From the NCBI GenBank assembly GCA_900088475.1, contig FLMG01002472.1, forward strand, positions 1-64,000: a stretch of 64,000 nucleotides of DNA. Reading direction: 5' to 3'. A model generated the notes under the pieces. That model was not told the origin of the DNA, ran no database searches, and saw only the letters and a program-made list of their open reading frames with translations. Within the stretch, counting starts at the first letter, position 1, and each line of letters begins with the position of its first letter. A program made the translations under genes and the position numbers. Shown here one piece after another: positions 4,960 through 24,804 of the stretch. The stretch is from Hyphochytrium catenoides. Lineage: Eukaryota; Protista; Hyphochytriomycota.

Positions 4960-5036
4960 TGCTAGATTTTAATCATTGGATGGTGAGCACTTTGAATTAA
5001 TATTGGGGGGTGTCTGGATATACCGGAGAAAAGTTT

Positions 5037-5121
5037 TGTACGCTCCGGTTTTTGAACCCAGGACCTCCCTCTGTCTTTGATGCCGACACCCTAACCAGTA
5101 TGCACCATACGCCAAACGTAC
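5037..5121 (-). ncRNA. Second, more decayed copy of the LTR tRNA-like gene
   Basis: Same acceptor stem GTACGTT/AGCGTAC. The T arm is mutated (GGTTCAAAAACCGG) and there is a 4-nt insertion. Confidence 0.7.
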
Positions 5122-5307
5122 TCTTGCTAATCTTCGTTTTTGTTTATATNNNNNNNNNNNNNNNNNNNNNNNNNNNNNNNNNNNNNNNNNNNNNNNNNNN
5201 NNNNNNNNNNNNNNNNNNNNNNNNNNNNNNNNNNNNNNNNNNNNNNNNNNNNNNNNNNNNNNNNNNNNNNNNNNNNNNNNNNNNNNNNNNNNNNNNNNAA
5301 TCGCTCT

Positions 5308-5319
5308 GAGCGTACACCA
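5308..5319 (-). promoter_or_regulatory. Primer-binding site of the family C element
   Basis: TGGTGTACGCTC directly abuts the LTR end ...CTAACA. It starts with TGG, the complement of tRNA CCA. Confidence 0.8.
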
Positions 5320-5396
5320 TGTTAGATTTTAATCGTTGGATGGTGAGCACTTTAAATTAATATTGGGGGGTGTCTGGATATACCGGAGAAAAGTCT

Positions 5397-5477
5397 TGTA
5401 CGCTCCGGGATTTGAACCCAGGACCTCTGTCTTTGATGCTGACACCCTAACCAGTATGCACCATACACCAAACGTAC
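5397..5477 (-). ncRNA. tRNA-like Pol III gene inside the 5' LTR of family C (possibly tRNA-Pro(AGG)-derived)
   Basis: GTACGTT TGGTGTATGGTGCATACTGGTTAGGGTGTCAGCATCAAAGACAGAGGTC CTGGG TTCAAAT CCCGG AGCGTAC A. It has a 7-bp acceptor stem (one G-U), an intact T arm and B box (GGTTCAAATCC), an A-box-like TGGTGCATACTGG, discriminator A, and TTTT 4 nt downstream. D and anticodon arms are non-canonical. Confidence 0.8.
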
Positions 5478-5575
5478 TCTTGACTAATCACCGTTTTTCT
5501 TTATATACCAGGGATTTTCCCCTCTGCGTCGTCCGCTGTACACTTTTTGGTTTCAGCGTCGATCACAGTTCAACA

Positions 5576-8348: not shown

Positions 8349-8672
8349 TGTTGGATTTGTATGGGATGATTGGACAATGTCATTAGATGAGAGTGCTCGA
8401 CTTATAAGCCCAACTGGGGTCCCATAATCTAGAGCTATTCTGACTATGCCAACTATTCCGAATAAACCCTAGGATATGGAGCTATAGAGATATCCCTGTC
8501 TAGAATAGTCAGTCCTGAAGGTATTCCGGGGTACTGACCATAAGCCATAGACATAAACAGGGACATTTCGTTTGCTTCATATCTCGGCTTCTACTGGGAG
8601 TTTAGAGCTGATACTTGGGTAGTTAAGCTTGCCAGCTTGTAGTCCAGATAGCTGTGCCCTCAGACTCTAACA
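8349..8672 (-). mobile_element. Complete LTR, family A (324 bp)
   Basis: TGTT...AACA termini. It is the reverse complement of 9847-10169 with about 8 differences by manual count. Confidence 0.95.
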
Positions 8673-10169: not shown

Positions 10170-11282
10170 TTTGCGCCAGTAGTCAGCTATGAGTCTGTCC
10201 GATGTATACCTCTCTCTAGCTGCGATGTACGACTTTGAGATTCATCATCTGGATATTCGATCTGCCTTTCTCCATGGAGATCTTGAGGAGACCATATACA
10301 TGTGCCAACCACCGGGATTCGCTCAACCAGGACAGGAACATCTGGTTTGTAAGCTAAAGCGCAGCATTTATGGGCTCAAACAAAGTCCTCGCCAATGGAA
10401 CAAAGTATTAGACAGTTATCTTCGCGACAACGGATTTGAACCCAGCTTGTGTGAACCTTGCGTCTACATCAACAGGTCCGGGGAGGATGGCAAGCCGACC
10501 ATCGTGTCGACTTTCGTAGACGACCTGCTGATCTTCGCGCCAAGCAACACTCGTGCGGATCAAGTTAAAAGACTTCCAAAGGACAGATTTGATGGAAGGA
10601 CTTAGGAGAACTCCATTACTTCCTAGGAGTAGAAGCTATTAGGGATCGAAAAAATCGAAAGATTTACCTTCGCCAACGAAGATTTGTTCAAGACCTTCTG
10701 AAGCGTTATGGCATGGAAGATTGTAACCCAATCAGCGCGCCTGTTACTCCCGGTGAAAAGCTACCCAATGCAGGCTCTCTCTCTACGCTGACTTCTGAAG
10801 AGGAGGAATATTTACTCAAGATGCCGTACAGGAATGCTGTTGGCAGTCTTATGCATCTGATGGTAGCCTCCAGGCCAGATATAGCCTTCGCGGTACAATC
10901 GGTTAGCCAGCATATGACTAACTATAGATAGACTCACTGGGCCGCTGTGAAGCGGATAGTGAGATGTCTGAAAGGGACTGCAGACCACTTCTTATGTCTA
11001 GGGGGAGAAGCTACCTCAGACATCAATCAGAGTCCAAGACTACAGTACAACTCTTTGCAGATGCAGACTGGGCAAATGACCCTATGAGCAGGAAACCCAT
11101 TTCAGGCTACTTTCTTCCACTGGGGACTGGCGCTTTTAGTTGGAAGGCTAAGAAGCAAGACATAGTGGCTTCTTCAACTACTGAAGCTGAGTGCATCTCA
11201 CTTTGGACTGGAGCCAAACATGCAGAACACATCTCTTATTTCTTACAGGAGCTTCAGTTTCCACTGAGTAGACCCATCCTCG
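10170..11282 (+). pseudogene. pol: Ty1/Copia reverse transcriptase-RNase H, frameshifted
   Basis: FAPVV, HLDIRSAFLHGDLEETIYMCQPPGF, CKLKRSIYGLKQSPRQW, FVDDLL, YRNAVGSLMHL, RPDIAFAV, FADADWA, SWKAKKQDIVASSTTEAE; several frameshifts and stops. Confidence 0.97.
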
Positions 11283-23830: not shown

Positions 23831-23902
23831 GCTCTTGTAGCTCAGTGGTAGTAGCATTCGCTTAGTAAGCGAAAGGTCCTGGGTTCAATCCCCAGCAGGA
23901 CA
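23831..23902 (+). tRNA. tRNA-Thr(AGT), possibly pseudo
   Basis: GCTCTTG TA GCTCAGTGGTAGTAGC A TTCGC TT AGT AA GCGAA AGGTC CTGGG TTCAATC CCCAG CAGGACA. Anticodon and T stems are perfect and a T7 terminator lies at 23908-23914. The top two acceptor pairs are mismatched. Confidence 0.85.
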
Positions 23903-24804
23903 ACTTCTTTTTTTCCCGCTGAAACACTAAAGTGAAGGTCTTGGGAGTGCAGGGGCTGAGCAGGGAGTGTGGGGTGTGAGCTGGACCTACAGTACTGTAC
24001 TCCTTTAGACCCTCCTAGACCACTCTGATTTATAAGTCTAATTGCACTGTGTAAATAGTCCTACTTGTACTTGGACAACTTCAAATGTGAGGGAGCTGGG
24101 GAGCTGGACACTGGAGTAAGGAATCATAACTACAAGTACAAATATTAGAACTACTGTAGGAGTGTTGTACGTACTTGTACTTTGTAAAGTTGAGGAGCAG
24201 TGTGGATGGTCAATAGAATGGGTCCAAGACGGCACAAGCACACAAGACACGAGCAGCTCCTACACAGTATACAGAATTAGAGGCTGCGAATCAGGTATGA
24301 GTGAGGCTCAAATTCTGGATCTACTGGAGGTTCTTTCAGATTTTGCACAATTGTCGAAGTTGAAGGAGCGATGAGAGAGAAGAGGAAGGCTGGCCTGGCG
24401 AAAGGACATCTTCAAGAGAAGCAAAGCCTTTTCTCTACTTTACTGGCAAGATCAGAGGCACAGACGAAGGACGGAGGGTGCGCTATCGTCACCTCCTGGC
24501 GCCCATGCCCGTGCTTCTGGATGTTGAAGATCAAAGGCGAAGAAGAAGGGTAGAGAGAGTGATCATCACTTTCTGGCCCCTTCCTTGCCCATGCTTTCAG
24601 GGTGTATGACGAACTTGGCGCTTGCCGCTAGTTGGCGTCATTAAACGCGTTATAATAGCACTTACTTAGTTGGCGGGTTCTATCTCATAGCCGGAACGCC
24701 AACAATGACTCTCTTAACCTTTGGTCCTAGCGTCGCTAATTACAGGCCCAGTCGTCTTTGATTGCCACTGTTGAAGTTTGGGGCGTAGCACACTCTTTGC
24801 CACC

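Follow-up and report, generated by a model that had tools for sequence, protein, structure and literature searches.

The stretch of Hyphochytrium catenoides DNA analysed here (hereafter, the window) comprises the 64,000 nucleotides at positions 1 to 64,000 of contig FLMG01002472.1 (assembly GCA_900088475.1). On its minus strand lies a 256-bp LTR with TG...CA ends (5575-5320), which begins TGTTGAAC, finishes TCTAACA and belongs to a family for which 69 distinct full-length copies were aligned. The LTR divides into a U3-like part A (5575-5478), a tRNA-like part T of 81 nt (5477-5397), delimited by ARAGORN and by its predicted fold, and a U5-like part B (5396-5320). The tRNA-like sequence is in sense orientation. 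Approximately 23-30 nt upstream of its 5' end is a TATATAAA box (5507-5500), also present in the family consensus, and 5-8 nt past its 3' end is a TTTT run (5392-5389) that is a candidate Pol III terminator. In some organisms tRNA genes require an upstream TATA, and the TATATAAA box could serve either Pol II or Pol III. The primer-binding site (PBS) TGGTGTACGCTC is flush with the LTR end (5319-5308) and is followed by the start of the internal region, AGAGCGATT (5307-5299), which matches the 125-nt internal region of complete copies. An earlier inspection made from the letters alone (the sequence-only reading) had described this LTR, the sense tRNA-like sequence inside it and the TTTT that follows, and our own reading of the sequence together with ARAGORN bears the description out.

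Beyond an assembly gap of 149 N (5298-5150), a 3' LTR corresponding to LTR positions 70-256 is found on the same strand (5149-4960), with 92% identity to the 5' LTR over the alignment. Its copy of the tRNA-like sequence (5121-5037) carries a 4-nt insertion and is mutated in the T-loop and T-stem (TTCAAAAACC). Judged from the complete copies, the gap should comprise approximately 104 nt of internal region, with a polypurine tract (...CCGGGGGAG) among them, and then positions 1-69 of the 3' LTR. With this expected length of ~173 nt set against the 149 N present, the order and orientation of the two sides fit a single element. Putative 5-bp target-site duplications, GATAC on the 5' side (5580-5576) and GATAT on the 3' side (4959-4955), are identical at 4/5 positions. 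Homology to a neighbouring LTR family ends at the 5' end of the element and is not resumed past its 3' end. Continuity of the window copy across the gap is unproven by these flanks, the duplication being matched at 4/5 positions only, and the copy may be a scaffold join of two copies or a product of inter-copy recombination. The main finding is unaffected by this caveat, because complete gap-free copies show the same arrangement.

The element belongs to an abundant family of Helenus-type TRIMs, that is, non-coding miniature LTR retrotransposons, here of ~640 bp, whose LTRs each contain a tRNA-derived sequence. The 61-Mb assembly contains at least 170 LTR candidates and ~41 internal regions, and 20 LTR-internal-LTR arrangements were identified. 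The intact ones, as seen in gap-free copies, are composed of a 256-bp LTR, an internal region of ~125 nt and a second 256-bp LTR, for a total of ~637 bp. In these the PBS, TGGTGTACGCTCCG, is flush with the 5' LTR end and the polypurine tract ...CCGGGGGAG (GGGGGAG) is flush with the 3' LTR start; clean 5-bp target duplications (AGAAG, CTAAA and CGTAG) flank gap-free copies. Judged from its length of 125 nt, the internal region is too short for a protein. The family thus combines all the hallmarks of a TRIM, with short TG...CA LTRs, a short non-coding interior, an overall length below ~1 kb, a PBS, a polypurine tract and target duplications. It also has the defining feature of Helenus, a sense tRNA-derived sequence with Pol III boxes in the LTR, the A box being partial. 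The 5-bp duplication and the TGTT...AACA termini suggest a Copia-type source for the reverse transcriptase. Members of an LTR pair are no more than 90-97.6% identical, so the family may be extinct. The search for an autonomous partner, which the sequence-only reading had proposed, returned no other element in the assembly with the same PBS or internal region; one candidate (L079) was discarded since it contains the 12-mer by chance within a coding sequence. Neighbouring Copia-type LTRs in the window have a host-tRNA PBS of the initiator-tRNA anticodon-loop type (GGTTATGGGCG), and the PBS of the TRIM is therefore not the default of this genome.

The tRNA-like module was called by ARAGORN as a gene of undetermined type with a 4-base 'anticodon' (5397-5477, minus strand). 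It ends ...CCCGGAGCGTACA, followed by AGAC and then by TTTT (5392-5389), and no CCA is encoded. Its predicted fold has a 7-bp acceptor stem, including one G-U pair, and a 5-bp T-arm, with non-canonical D and anticodon parts. The B box, GGTTCAAATCC, is a perfect fit, so that of the A and B boxes and intact acceptor and T arms claimed previously, the acceptor stem, the T-arm and the B box stand and the A box is reduced to a partial fit. The Rfam tRNA model (RF00005) gives no match to the module even at E<=10, and this, together with the 4-base anticodon from ARAGORN, sets the module apart from a functional tRNA gene. Given this degeneracy (no Rfam match, partial A box), it is uncertain that Pol III transcription and processing would be efficient.

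The module is nonetheless maintained across the family. ARAGORN calls a tRNA-like gene in the window copy and in 56 further copies; the acceptor stem is paired at 7/7 positions in 55 of the 69 aligned copies and the T-stem at 5/5 in 51, while a TTTT occurs within 14 nt after part T in 51/67. When variability was compared over the alignment of 69 distinct full-length LTR copies, variation in an unbiased subset was 0.023 for part T versus 0.043 and 0.050 for the flanking LTR parts (Fisher p = 3e-7), and shared variants occupied 5/81 columns of part T versus 23/98 and 19/77 in the flanks. In the lineage that transposes, constraint acts on the tRNA-like segment, which has about half the variability of the remaining LTR. 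The sole common polymorphism in part T is A/G at T-loop position 57, where tRNAs accept either purine.

The PBS of the window copy is the exact 12-nt reverse complement of GAGCGTACA+CCA, corresponding to the last 9 nt of part T and an added CCA. The earlier claim of an exact complement to the tRNA-like 3' end plus CCA, adjoining the LTR, is thus verified at 5319-5308. With the family consensus PBS, TGGTGTACGCTCCG, 14 nt are matched, as against 12 nt in the window copy, which has C13A, and the 14-nt match is seen in every copy with both parts readable. The PBS 12-mer occurs 30 times in the genome, versus 2 occurrences for a reversed control, and the 30 occurrences of GAGCGTACACCA are accounted for by the PBSs of the family, two units that are described below and one chance site in a coding sequence. 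The probability of an 11-nt match placed exactly at a tRNA 3' end beside TGG is ~2e-7 (4^-11), and a chance origin of the complementarity is excluded. In the LTR DNA the tRNA-like sequence is followed by AAA, not CCA. That the LTR is followed by TGG, and not by TTT, indicates a PBS shaped by a CCA-ending primer and not by an inverted duplication of LTR DNA. Past the 14 nt, the first part of the internal region shows no significant similarity to the antisense of the tRNA-like sequence. A 20-nt match in copy L071 lies in an indel-prone hairpin and was not used as evidence.

A host tRNA with the same 3' end was searched for in the whole assembly, seven times with patterns anchored in the T-loop or the acceptor and once with a tRNA covariance model, the latter scoring 63 of 1710 candidates. 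The sequence-only reading had named such a tRNA as the result that would speak against it; within the 61-Mb assembly, GAGCGTACA is the 3' end of no canonical host tRNA and of no other gene. Of the 85 matches to TTCRANNNNNNGAGCGTACA, every one belongs to this TRIM family, with 0 for the control, and the anchored searches of the whole assembly returned no other tRNA-like gene with a PBS match of at least 9 nt. Relaxed patterns gave background-level counts in the assembly, and the one tRNA-looking match among them was no tRNA according to ARAGORN. It is conceivable that a host tRNA primes the element all the same, either absent from the assembly or pairing over 8-9 nt only, and that the LTR copy derives from that tRNA and acts as a promoter only. 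Described Helenus families all have a host tRNA as their default primer (PMC10886601). With the assembly broken into 4759 contigs, a host tRNA could be missing from it, the covariance scoring amounts to an incomplete inventory, and one candidate 3' end, the best alternative found, pairs with the PBS over 8 nt only. Such a match is, however, far weaker than the 14 nt shared with the element's own RNA; moreover, tRNA genes, which are short, usually occur in several copies and normally assemble well, and the seven whole-assembly searches returned no such gene beyond the single match that ARAGORN rejected. We regard a host tRNA primer as distinctly improbable.

The complementarity could also be something other than a primer-template relation: either a relic, such as a remnant of the way in which the element originated, or a structure that acts in cis at the RNA or DNA level, such as an inverted repeat of the tRNA-like 3' end and the leader that aids packaging, dimerisation or strand transfer. 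The family would then now be inactive. The tRNA-like 3' end and the PBS do form an inverted repeat of 11-14 nt, 77 nt apart, the LTR pairs are 2-10% diverged, and the rearranged copies L056 and L062 join inverted LTR ends a few nucleotides past the tRNA-like sequence. Against this, the block lies exactly at the place required of a PBS, begins TGG and abuts the CA of the LTR. A cis hairpin of the tRNA-like 3' end with the PBS is absent from the predicted fold of the tRNA-like sequence, spacer and leader, the stability of which is no better than that of shuffles (z=-1.07). Furthermore, at least 170 LTR copies with 5-bp duplications imply that the family transposed in this genome and hence had a primer here. 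We consider a relic or a cis-acting structure unlikely.

The reading that we prefer is that the element is primed by a tRNA-like RNA of its own, which appears likely. The tRNA-like sequence would be transcribed from many LTR copies, as suggested by the perfect B box, the upstream TATA box and the downstream TTTT run. The transcript would then be trimmed at the discriminator base by RNase P and RNase Z, given that the acceptor stem and T-arm make up the minihelix recognised by RNase P, RNase Z and the CCA-adding enzyme, and the trimmed RNA would gain CCA. The predicted primer is an RNA of ~84 nt running from the tRNA-like 5' end to ...GAGCGUACACCA, with a non-templated CCA. Once tailed, it would pair through 14 nt with the PBS in the element's genomic RNA and prime minus-strand synthesis by the reverse transcriptase of an autonomous element. 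Either a small RNA in free form or a longer element transcript, through its tRNA-like 3' end, may act as the primer. Each step of this scheme, from transcription and processing through CCA tailing to priming, is inferred, and the private-primer interpretation of the sequence-only reading is, as a whole, partly supported; the accompanying proposal of an escape from tRNA-fragment silencing at the PBS is speculation.

Two independent loci speak for self-priming and also bear on the form of the primer. Each contains LTR sequence from nt 1 through the tRNA-like 3' end, then CCA, then unrelated flank. These units would be compatible with a form of self-priming in which the primer is a long element transcript and not a small RNA in free form: the genomic RNA would start near the tRNA-like 5' end and be cut by tRNA-type processing where the tRNA-like part of the 3' LTR ends, and this 3' end, CCA-tailed or extended on TGG, would pair with the PBS in cis or on a partner RNA. 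The first nucleotide of the units is exactly LTR nt 1, at the boundary with the polypurine tract; they thus include U3, which makes them a better fit to a copy of a genomic-RNA 3' end than to a copy of a 5'-processed small RNA. The TATA box ~25 nt upstream of the tRNA-like 5' end supports such a start site. Related sequence was also detected, in small shares, in four soil metatranscriptome and metagenome runs as five short, low-depth contigs of ~90% identity, and one metatranscriptome contig stops at the 3' boundary of the tRNA-like part in the 3' LTR, contig ends being weak evidence. However, there are two units only, and identical processing would also sever the 5' copy from the genomic RNA. 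The units can, moreover, arise without a CCA-adding enzyme by a template switch, in which a nascent plus strand ending ...CGGAGCGTACA would anneal to the PBS of an RNase-H-trimmed template, with three templated nucleotides then added before run-off. In one of the two, the CCA could be part of a 4-bp target duplication, CCAT. Overall, priming by the end of a long transcript strikes us as possible but doubtful.

Other rearranged and related sequences were also considered. Copy L056 was rejected as a fossil primer-cDNA junction, a nested or inverted insertion being simpler: L062 has an inverted LTR end joined ~5 nt past the tRNA-like sequence with no CCA, and LTR variants reading ...ACAACAC exist. 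A divergent relative, L082, is a single relic copy with no PBS. Two metagenome scans returned no second family or related-species sequences in which covariation of PBS and tRNA-like sequence could be followed. Two of the soil-metatranscriptome contigs (~90% identical) differ from the reference only in spacer B, the 3' part of the tRNA-like sequence and the PBS being unchanged.

A more far-reaching form of self-priming can be envisaged as a closed loop. The R region would be the tRNA-like module itself, and the genomic RNA would be cut and CCA-tailed at the module in the 3' LTR instead of being polyadenylated, with priming by that end or by the free small RNA of any of more than 85 LTR copies. 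We put this forward tentatively, and hold it to be doubtful as it stands.

Among known elements, the closest resemblance is to Helenus (TRIMp3), which is likewise miniature and non-coding, has a sense tRNA-derived sequence with A and B boxes in its LTR and a PBS and polypurine tract between the LTRs, shows 5-bp target duplications in fungi and plants, and has many solo LTRs. The PBS of described Helenus matches the 3' end of a host tRNA or, as in the majority of fungal families, its anticodon loop; most of their tRNA-like sequences are not predicted as functional tRNA, and the proposed role is that of a Pol III promoter (Kojima 2024, PMC10886601). In the present family, by contrast, the PBS fits the 3' end of the element's own tRNA-like sequence plus CCA over 14 nt, and the PBS complementary to a host tRNA that described Helenus has in common with an autonomous Copia or Gypsy partner was not found; that trait characterises the known members and does not belong to how Helenus is defined. 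A PBS that is complementary to the element's own tRNA-like 3' end plus CCA and matches no host tRNA found is new in comparison to described Helenus. The sequence-only reading had suspected as much, and the literature agrees: complementarity of the LTR tRNA-like sequence to the PBS was sought in described Helenus families and none was found (Kojima 2024, PMC10886601). The strings of our family are absent from the supplementary text files of that article. The comparison with Helenus and Cassandra drawn in the earlier reading is apt. Cassandra and Ajax also have a Pol III-type small-RNA gene inside a TRIM LTR, with tandem and solo-LTR forms; there, however, the embedded gene is derived from 5S rRNA, is not CCA-tailable and is unrelated to the PBS, and Rfam scans gave no 5S rRNA match in our element.

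A primer supplied by the element itself, and not by a host tRNA, is shared with Tf1 of S. pombe, where Levin and colleagues are said to have found that the first 11 nt of the element's own mRNA fold onto the PBS and are cut by RNase H to serve as primer. The Tf1 primer has neither tRNA-like structure nor CCA, whereas here the block forms the 3' terminus of a tRNA-like module inside the element and TGG faces a non-encoded CCA. The complementary block lies 77 nt upstream of the PBS and not at the transcript 5' end, and the predicted cis fold lacks the pairing. Outside the LTR elements, tRNA-like 3'-end modules of long transcripts are known from MALAT1 mascRNA, the tRNA-like ends of plant viral RNAs and the Neurospora Mauriceville retroplasmid. 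Such modules, degenerate in their tRNA-like fold but possessing an acceptor stem and T-arm, can be cut by RNase P and RNase Z and CCA-tailed, and in the Mauriceville retroplasmid reverse transcription begins at the tRNA-like CCA end. None of these is an LTR element with a PBS, and kinship to the present family is inferred.

LTR retrotransposons and retroviruses are thought to start reverse transcription from a host tRNA or, in the Tf1 group, from the 5' end of their own mRNA. If self-priming is true, an element carrying its own tRNA-like primer gene would be a third solution to priming, and the retention in the LTR of a Pol III-type gene, until now read only as a promoter, would be explained. 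Since the author of Helenus weighed self-complementarity and rejected it lacking any example, the field has a direct interest in a clear case. The idea is testable by standard tRNA sequencing and by a retrotransposition assay with compensatory mutations. The closed priming loop, if true, would give an LTR retroelement with an internalised tRNA primer, linking tRNA-primed retroelements to 'genomic tag' replicons, whose 3' ends are tRNA-like. For the family itself, self-priming would mean independence of the host tRNA repertoire, which would bear on host jumps and on defences in which tRNA fragments target the PBS.

The element lies on the minus strand of the window (5575–4960). Its 5′ LTR (5575–5320, 256 bp, TGTTGAAC...TCTAACA) is directly followed by the primer-binding site (PBS) string TGGTGTACGCTC (5319–5308) and nine more bases, all read from sequence, and an assembly gap written as N (5298–5150) separates the two LTR copies. 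By alignment, the second copy (5149–4960, minus strand) comprises the last 187 positions of the LTR and is 92% identical to the first. Within the first LTR, ARAGORN places a tRNA-like gene in LTR sense (5477–5397, minus strand), returned without a determined type and with a four-base 'anticodon'. The predicted structure shows an acceptor stem of 7 bp, one of them a G-U pair, a T-arm of 5 bp whose loop reads TTCAAAT, and a single long irregular hairpin instead of the D and anticodon arms; the Rfam tRNA model gave no match to the sequence at the gathering score, nor at E ≤ 10. In general, RNase P, RNase Z and the CCA-adding enzyme need no more than a minihelix of acceptor stem and T-arm, and the degenerate middle would therefore be no obstacle in principle. 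The 3′ end, ...CCCGGAGCGTACA, runs into AGAC and TTTT, and thus no CCA is encoded. In this copy GAGCGTACA extended by CCA is matched, as an exact reverse complement, by the first 12 bases past the LTR. The LTR, tRNA-like gene, TTTT and PBS complement described in the sequence-only reading were thus all recovered in place.

The element lies 170 nt (152 nt aligned) into the 3′ LTR of a second, Copia-type LTR family, and the remainder of that LTR is absent beyond it. One copy of this LTR (~324 bp, TGTTAGAGTC...ATCCAACA, minus strand) lies at 8672–8349, and the other runs from 5745 to 5576, at which point the 5′ end of the element begins; the family ends ...ATCCAACA, followed by GGTTATGGGCG, and encloses ~2.6 kb devoid of long open reading frames. 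Order and orientation on both sides of the gap are compatible with one element, and the span expected from complete copies is ~173 nt (internal region, 104 nt; LTR, 69 nt) versus the 149 N written. Homology to the second family stops exactly at the 5′ end of the element and does not resume past its 3′ end, and the putative target duplication is identical at four of five positions (GATAC/GATAT), so that continuity as one element is not established; the window copy is possibly a scaffold join of two copies, or a product of inter-copy recombination. The complementarity finding is independent of that continuity.

The 61-Mb assembly (4759 contigs) yielded at least 49 scored LTR matches from 170 candidates, and among the 86 loci sampled for the family there were 69 different LTR copies of full length, 26 different internal regions and 20 arrangements of the LTR-internal-LTR form. 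Querying the genome with the internal region returned 41 candidates, every one from this family, which indicates that solo LTRs make up most of the copies. Complete, gap-free copies consist of a 256-bp LTR, a 125-nt internal region, too short for a protein, and a second 256-bp LTR; the PBS directly abuts the 5′ LTR, a short polypurine tract (...CCGGGGGAG) directly abuts the 3′ LTR, and clean 5-bp target duplications (AGAAG, CTAAA, CGTAG) were seen. LTR pairs are 90–97.6% identical, and the family is therefore not very young. The element is a terminal-repeat retrotransposon in miniature, or TRIM, with tRNA-derived LTR sequence, which is the definition of Helenus, a group defined in fungi, animals and Selaginella (Kojima 2024, PMC10886601).

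The consensus PBS, TGGTGTACGCTCCG, which is also present in most copies, is complementary over 14 nt to the tRNA-like 3′ end once CCA is added; in the window copy, position 13 is changed from C to A. Complete copies with a readable PBS and a readable tRNA-like 3′ end all show the full 14 nt, beyond which the internal region has no significant similarity to the antisense tRNA-like sequence. The triplet directly past the LTR is TGG, so that the PBS bears the signature of a CCA-ending primer. RNA from the LTR tRNA-like module is the probable primer for reverse transcription of the family, a reading that we hold with moderate confidence. The complementarity might instead be a relic, or a structural inverted repeat with no priming role, but this is unlikely given the exact position of the PBS, the TGG triplet and a predicted cis fold in which the pairing is not used. 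At one locus (L071, C4384:460533) the match of the PBS region to the antisense tRNA-like sequence extends to 20 nt instead of 14. A PBS re-copied from the primer would have this appearance, but it is a single case, and the change is inside an indel-prone hairpin.

A host tRNA with the same 3′ end was the principal observation that, according to the sequence-only reading, would speak against self-priming, and none was found in the assembly by pattern searches and ARAGORN. A T-loop-anchored pattern with the last 9 nt gave 85 matches across the whole assembly versus 0 in the control, and all 85 share the tRNA-like body and the LTR sequence upstream and downstream. With the T-loop, discriminator and positions 66–68 relaxed, counts were at control level, the matches being mutated family copies and strings lacking a T-stem; allowing any 7-bp Watson-Crick acceptor stem with an unconstrained T-loop retrieved one string, which is not a tRNA. 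The best other candidate 3′ end pairs over 8 nt only. The 12-mer GAGCGTACACCA occurs 30 times in the assembly, versus 2 for its reversed control, each time as the antisense of a family PBS, as part of one of two CCA-bearing units or, at one site outside the family, as a chance match within coding sequence. From these searches and the 12-mer tally, a PBS-pairing 3′ end could arise in this assembly only by addition of CCA to the LTR tRNA-like transcript. Priming by a host tRNA absent from the assembly, which is fragmented (4759 contigs) and in which the tRNA covariance search scored 63 of 1710 candidates, is distinctly improbable. The only match resembling a tRNA 3′ half (9 nt) lies at a locus where ARAGORN detects no tRNA. 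A stand-alone tRNA-Thr(AGT) gene with no surrounding repeat is present in the window (23831–23904, plus strand; Rfam 47 bits), and its T-arm, AGGTCCTGGGTTCAATCCCCAG, is closely similar to that of the tRNA-like module; judged by this similarity, it may be a relative of the module's ancestor.

Across the 69 LTR copies, the tRNA-like sequence has a mean minor-allele frequency of 0.032, versus 0.068 and 0.067 for the flanking parts, and variants common to at least four copies, which reflect changes in transposing lineages rather than post-insertion decay, occupy 5 of 81 columns versus 23 of 98 and 19 of 77. Some copies had been gathered with a pattern demanding an intact 3′ end, and the count was therefore repeated on 31 copies from BLAST-collected loci (0.023 versus 0.043 and 0.050; Fisher p = 3e-7, with cells not fully independent), where the lower variation is equally present in the tRNA-like portion outside the collecting pattern. 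The sole common tRNA-like polymorphism is at T-loop position 57 (A in 38 copies, G in 31), where tRNAs accept either purine. Acceptor stems are complete (7/7) in 55 of the 69 copies and T-stems (5/5) in 51, and TTTT follows within 14 nt in 51. The low variation and the retained stems and TTTT run indicate that the whole module has mattered for transposition, a constraint that fits a primer but also a promoter or R region.

Two independent loci run from LTR nucleotide 1 to the tRNA-like 3′ end, then CCA, then unrelated sequence, with no 5-bp duplication at either. The one on C1131 shares 87% identity with the window LTR and the one on C2516 shares 98%. Given truncation at the same nucleotide, we calculate the chance of CCA following in both as ~1 in 4000, (1/64)^2. 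These units are reverse-transcription by-products connecting the tRNA-like 3′ end to CCA. They might be copies of a U3-carrying, CCA-tailed RNA, for instance the 3′ end of genomic RNA cut at the tRNA-like module. A route independent of the CCA-adding enzyme could also account for them: a nascent plus strand ending ...CGGAGCGTACA, complementary to the PBS, could anneal there to template that RNase H had trimmed up to the PBS, run off after gaining three templated bases and so acquire the CCA. A 4-bp duplication (CCAT) that includes the CCA is moreover a possible reading for one of the units. Because of this route and the CCAT reading, the units count as consistent with self-priming, not as proof. 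The self-primer could be a Pol III transcript acting as a free RNA, or a longer element RNA could supply it as its processed 3′ end; the U3 content of the two CCA-bearing units tilts towards the longer RNA.

A run search identified four soil metatranscriptome or metagenome runs with small shares, and five short, low-depth contigs align to the element at ~90% identity, uninformative for RNA ends or CCA. Two cover the 77-nt spacer together with the PBS on one side and the 3′ portion of the tRNA-like sequence on the other, with all differences from the reference within the spacer. A soil-metatranscriptome contig (L022:1577-1842) includes internal region, polypurine tract, U3 and tRNA-like sequence, and stops, with one unaligned base, at the tRNA-like 3′ end of the 3′ LTR. 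That is the expected site of a tRNA-type 3′ end of element RNA; contig ends are weak evidence, and this stop and the spacer-only differences are taken as leads only.

Some copies are rearranged. On C3117 (L056, a 1007-bp contig) the tRNA-like 3′ end is followed by ACA and an antisense LTR terminus, the joint lying 3 nt past the tRNA-like end, and L062 (C3699) has a similar inverted joint ~5 nt past it, without CCA. Since that joint is without CCA and LTR variants ending ...ACAACAC exist, C3117 was set aside as a primer-cDNA joint, and nested or inverted insertion is the simpler reading; both loci could have arisen by nested inverted insertion, or by rearrangement where the tRNA-like 3′ end and the PBS form an inverted repeat. 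A foldback/MITE-like element of ~310 bp, with terminal inverted repeats starting AGGTCAGGGACTTCTCCTCACATC, adjoins or lies inside copies at L040 (C1131, about 2140–2450), L082 (C3723) and L054 (C2982). Ends of the second LTR family abut different positions within the tRNA-like sequence at L039 (C1121), L065 (C4053) and L048 (C1893); these three independent insertions in an 81-nt target might mean that integration is directed to Pol III-type genes, or may simply be nesting in repeat-rich DNA. Many contigs bearing the element also carry Copia fragments and so represent repeat-rich regions, and the window contains a Copia-type reverse transcriptase fragment (10207–10599, plus strand; RVT_2, 119 bits).

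Copia-type reverse transcriptase genes are abundant in the assembly (288 candidates), with fewer of RVT_1 type (63, Gypsy-like and others). The TGTT...AACA termini and 5-bp duplications suggest a Copia-type helper; assembly searches found no autonomous element sharing the PBS or internal region. Most fungal Helenus families and their Copia partners have a PBS of the type seen in the second LTR family, matching the initiator-tRNA anticodon loop (Kojima, PMC10886601), and from the presence of that type in the second family the PBS of the element is not the default for LTR elements in this genome. The source genome is eukaryotic, with very long intronless genes; protein-atlas matches give a weak lead to protists or oomycetes, and a look for elicitin genes found none. 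On the plus strand of the window (24778–55712) are six successive long open frames (790, 1424, 924, 643, 1104 and 4929 aa), possibly one giant intronless surface-protein gene of ~10,000 residues; a Pfam scan of the 1424- and 924-aa frames found them packed with IPT/TIG domains, and a protein-atlas look-up grouped the 643-aa frame with IPT/TIG proteins.

The element itself is of known kind (Helenus/TRIMp3), and what is new is the relation of the PBS to its own tRNA-like sequence. Complementarity of this sort was sought in the study that defined Helenus and was not found (PMC10886601), and the PBS and tRNA-like strings of the family are absent from its supplementary text files. A 2026 survey cites Helenus solely as an example of LTRs acquiring tRNA-derived regions, and our search of a literature library on self-priming LTR elements and retrotransposons with their own tRNA-like primer returned no description of the arrangement. 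If priming were confirmed experimentally, LTR elements would be seen to have a further, new means of acquiring a primer.
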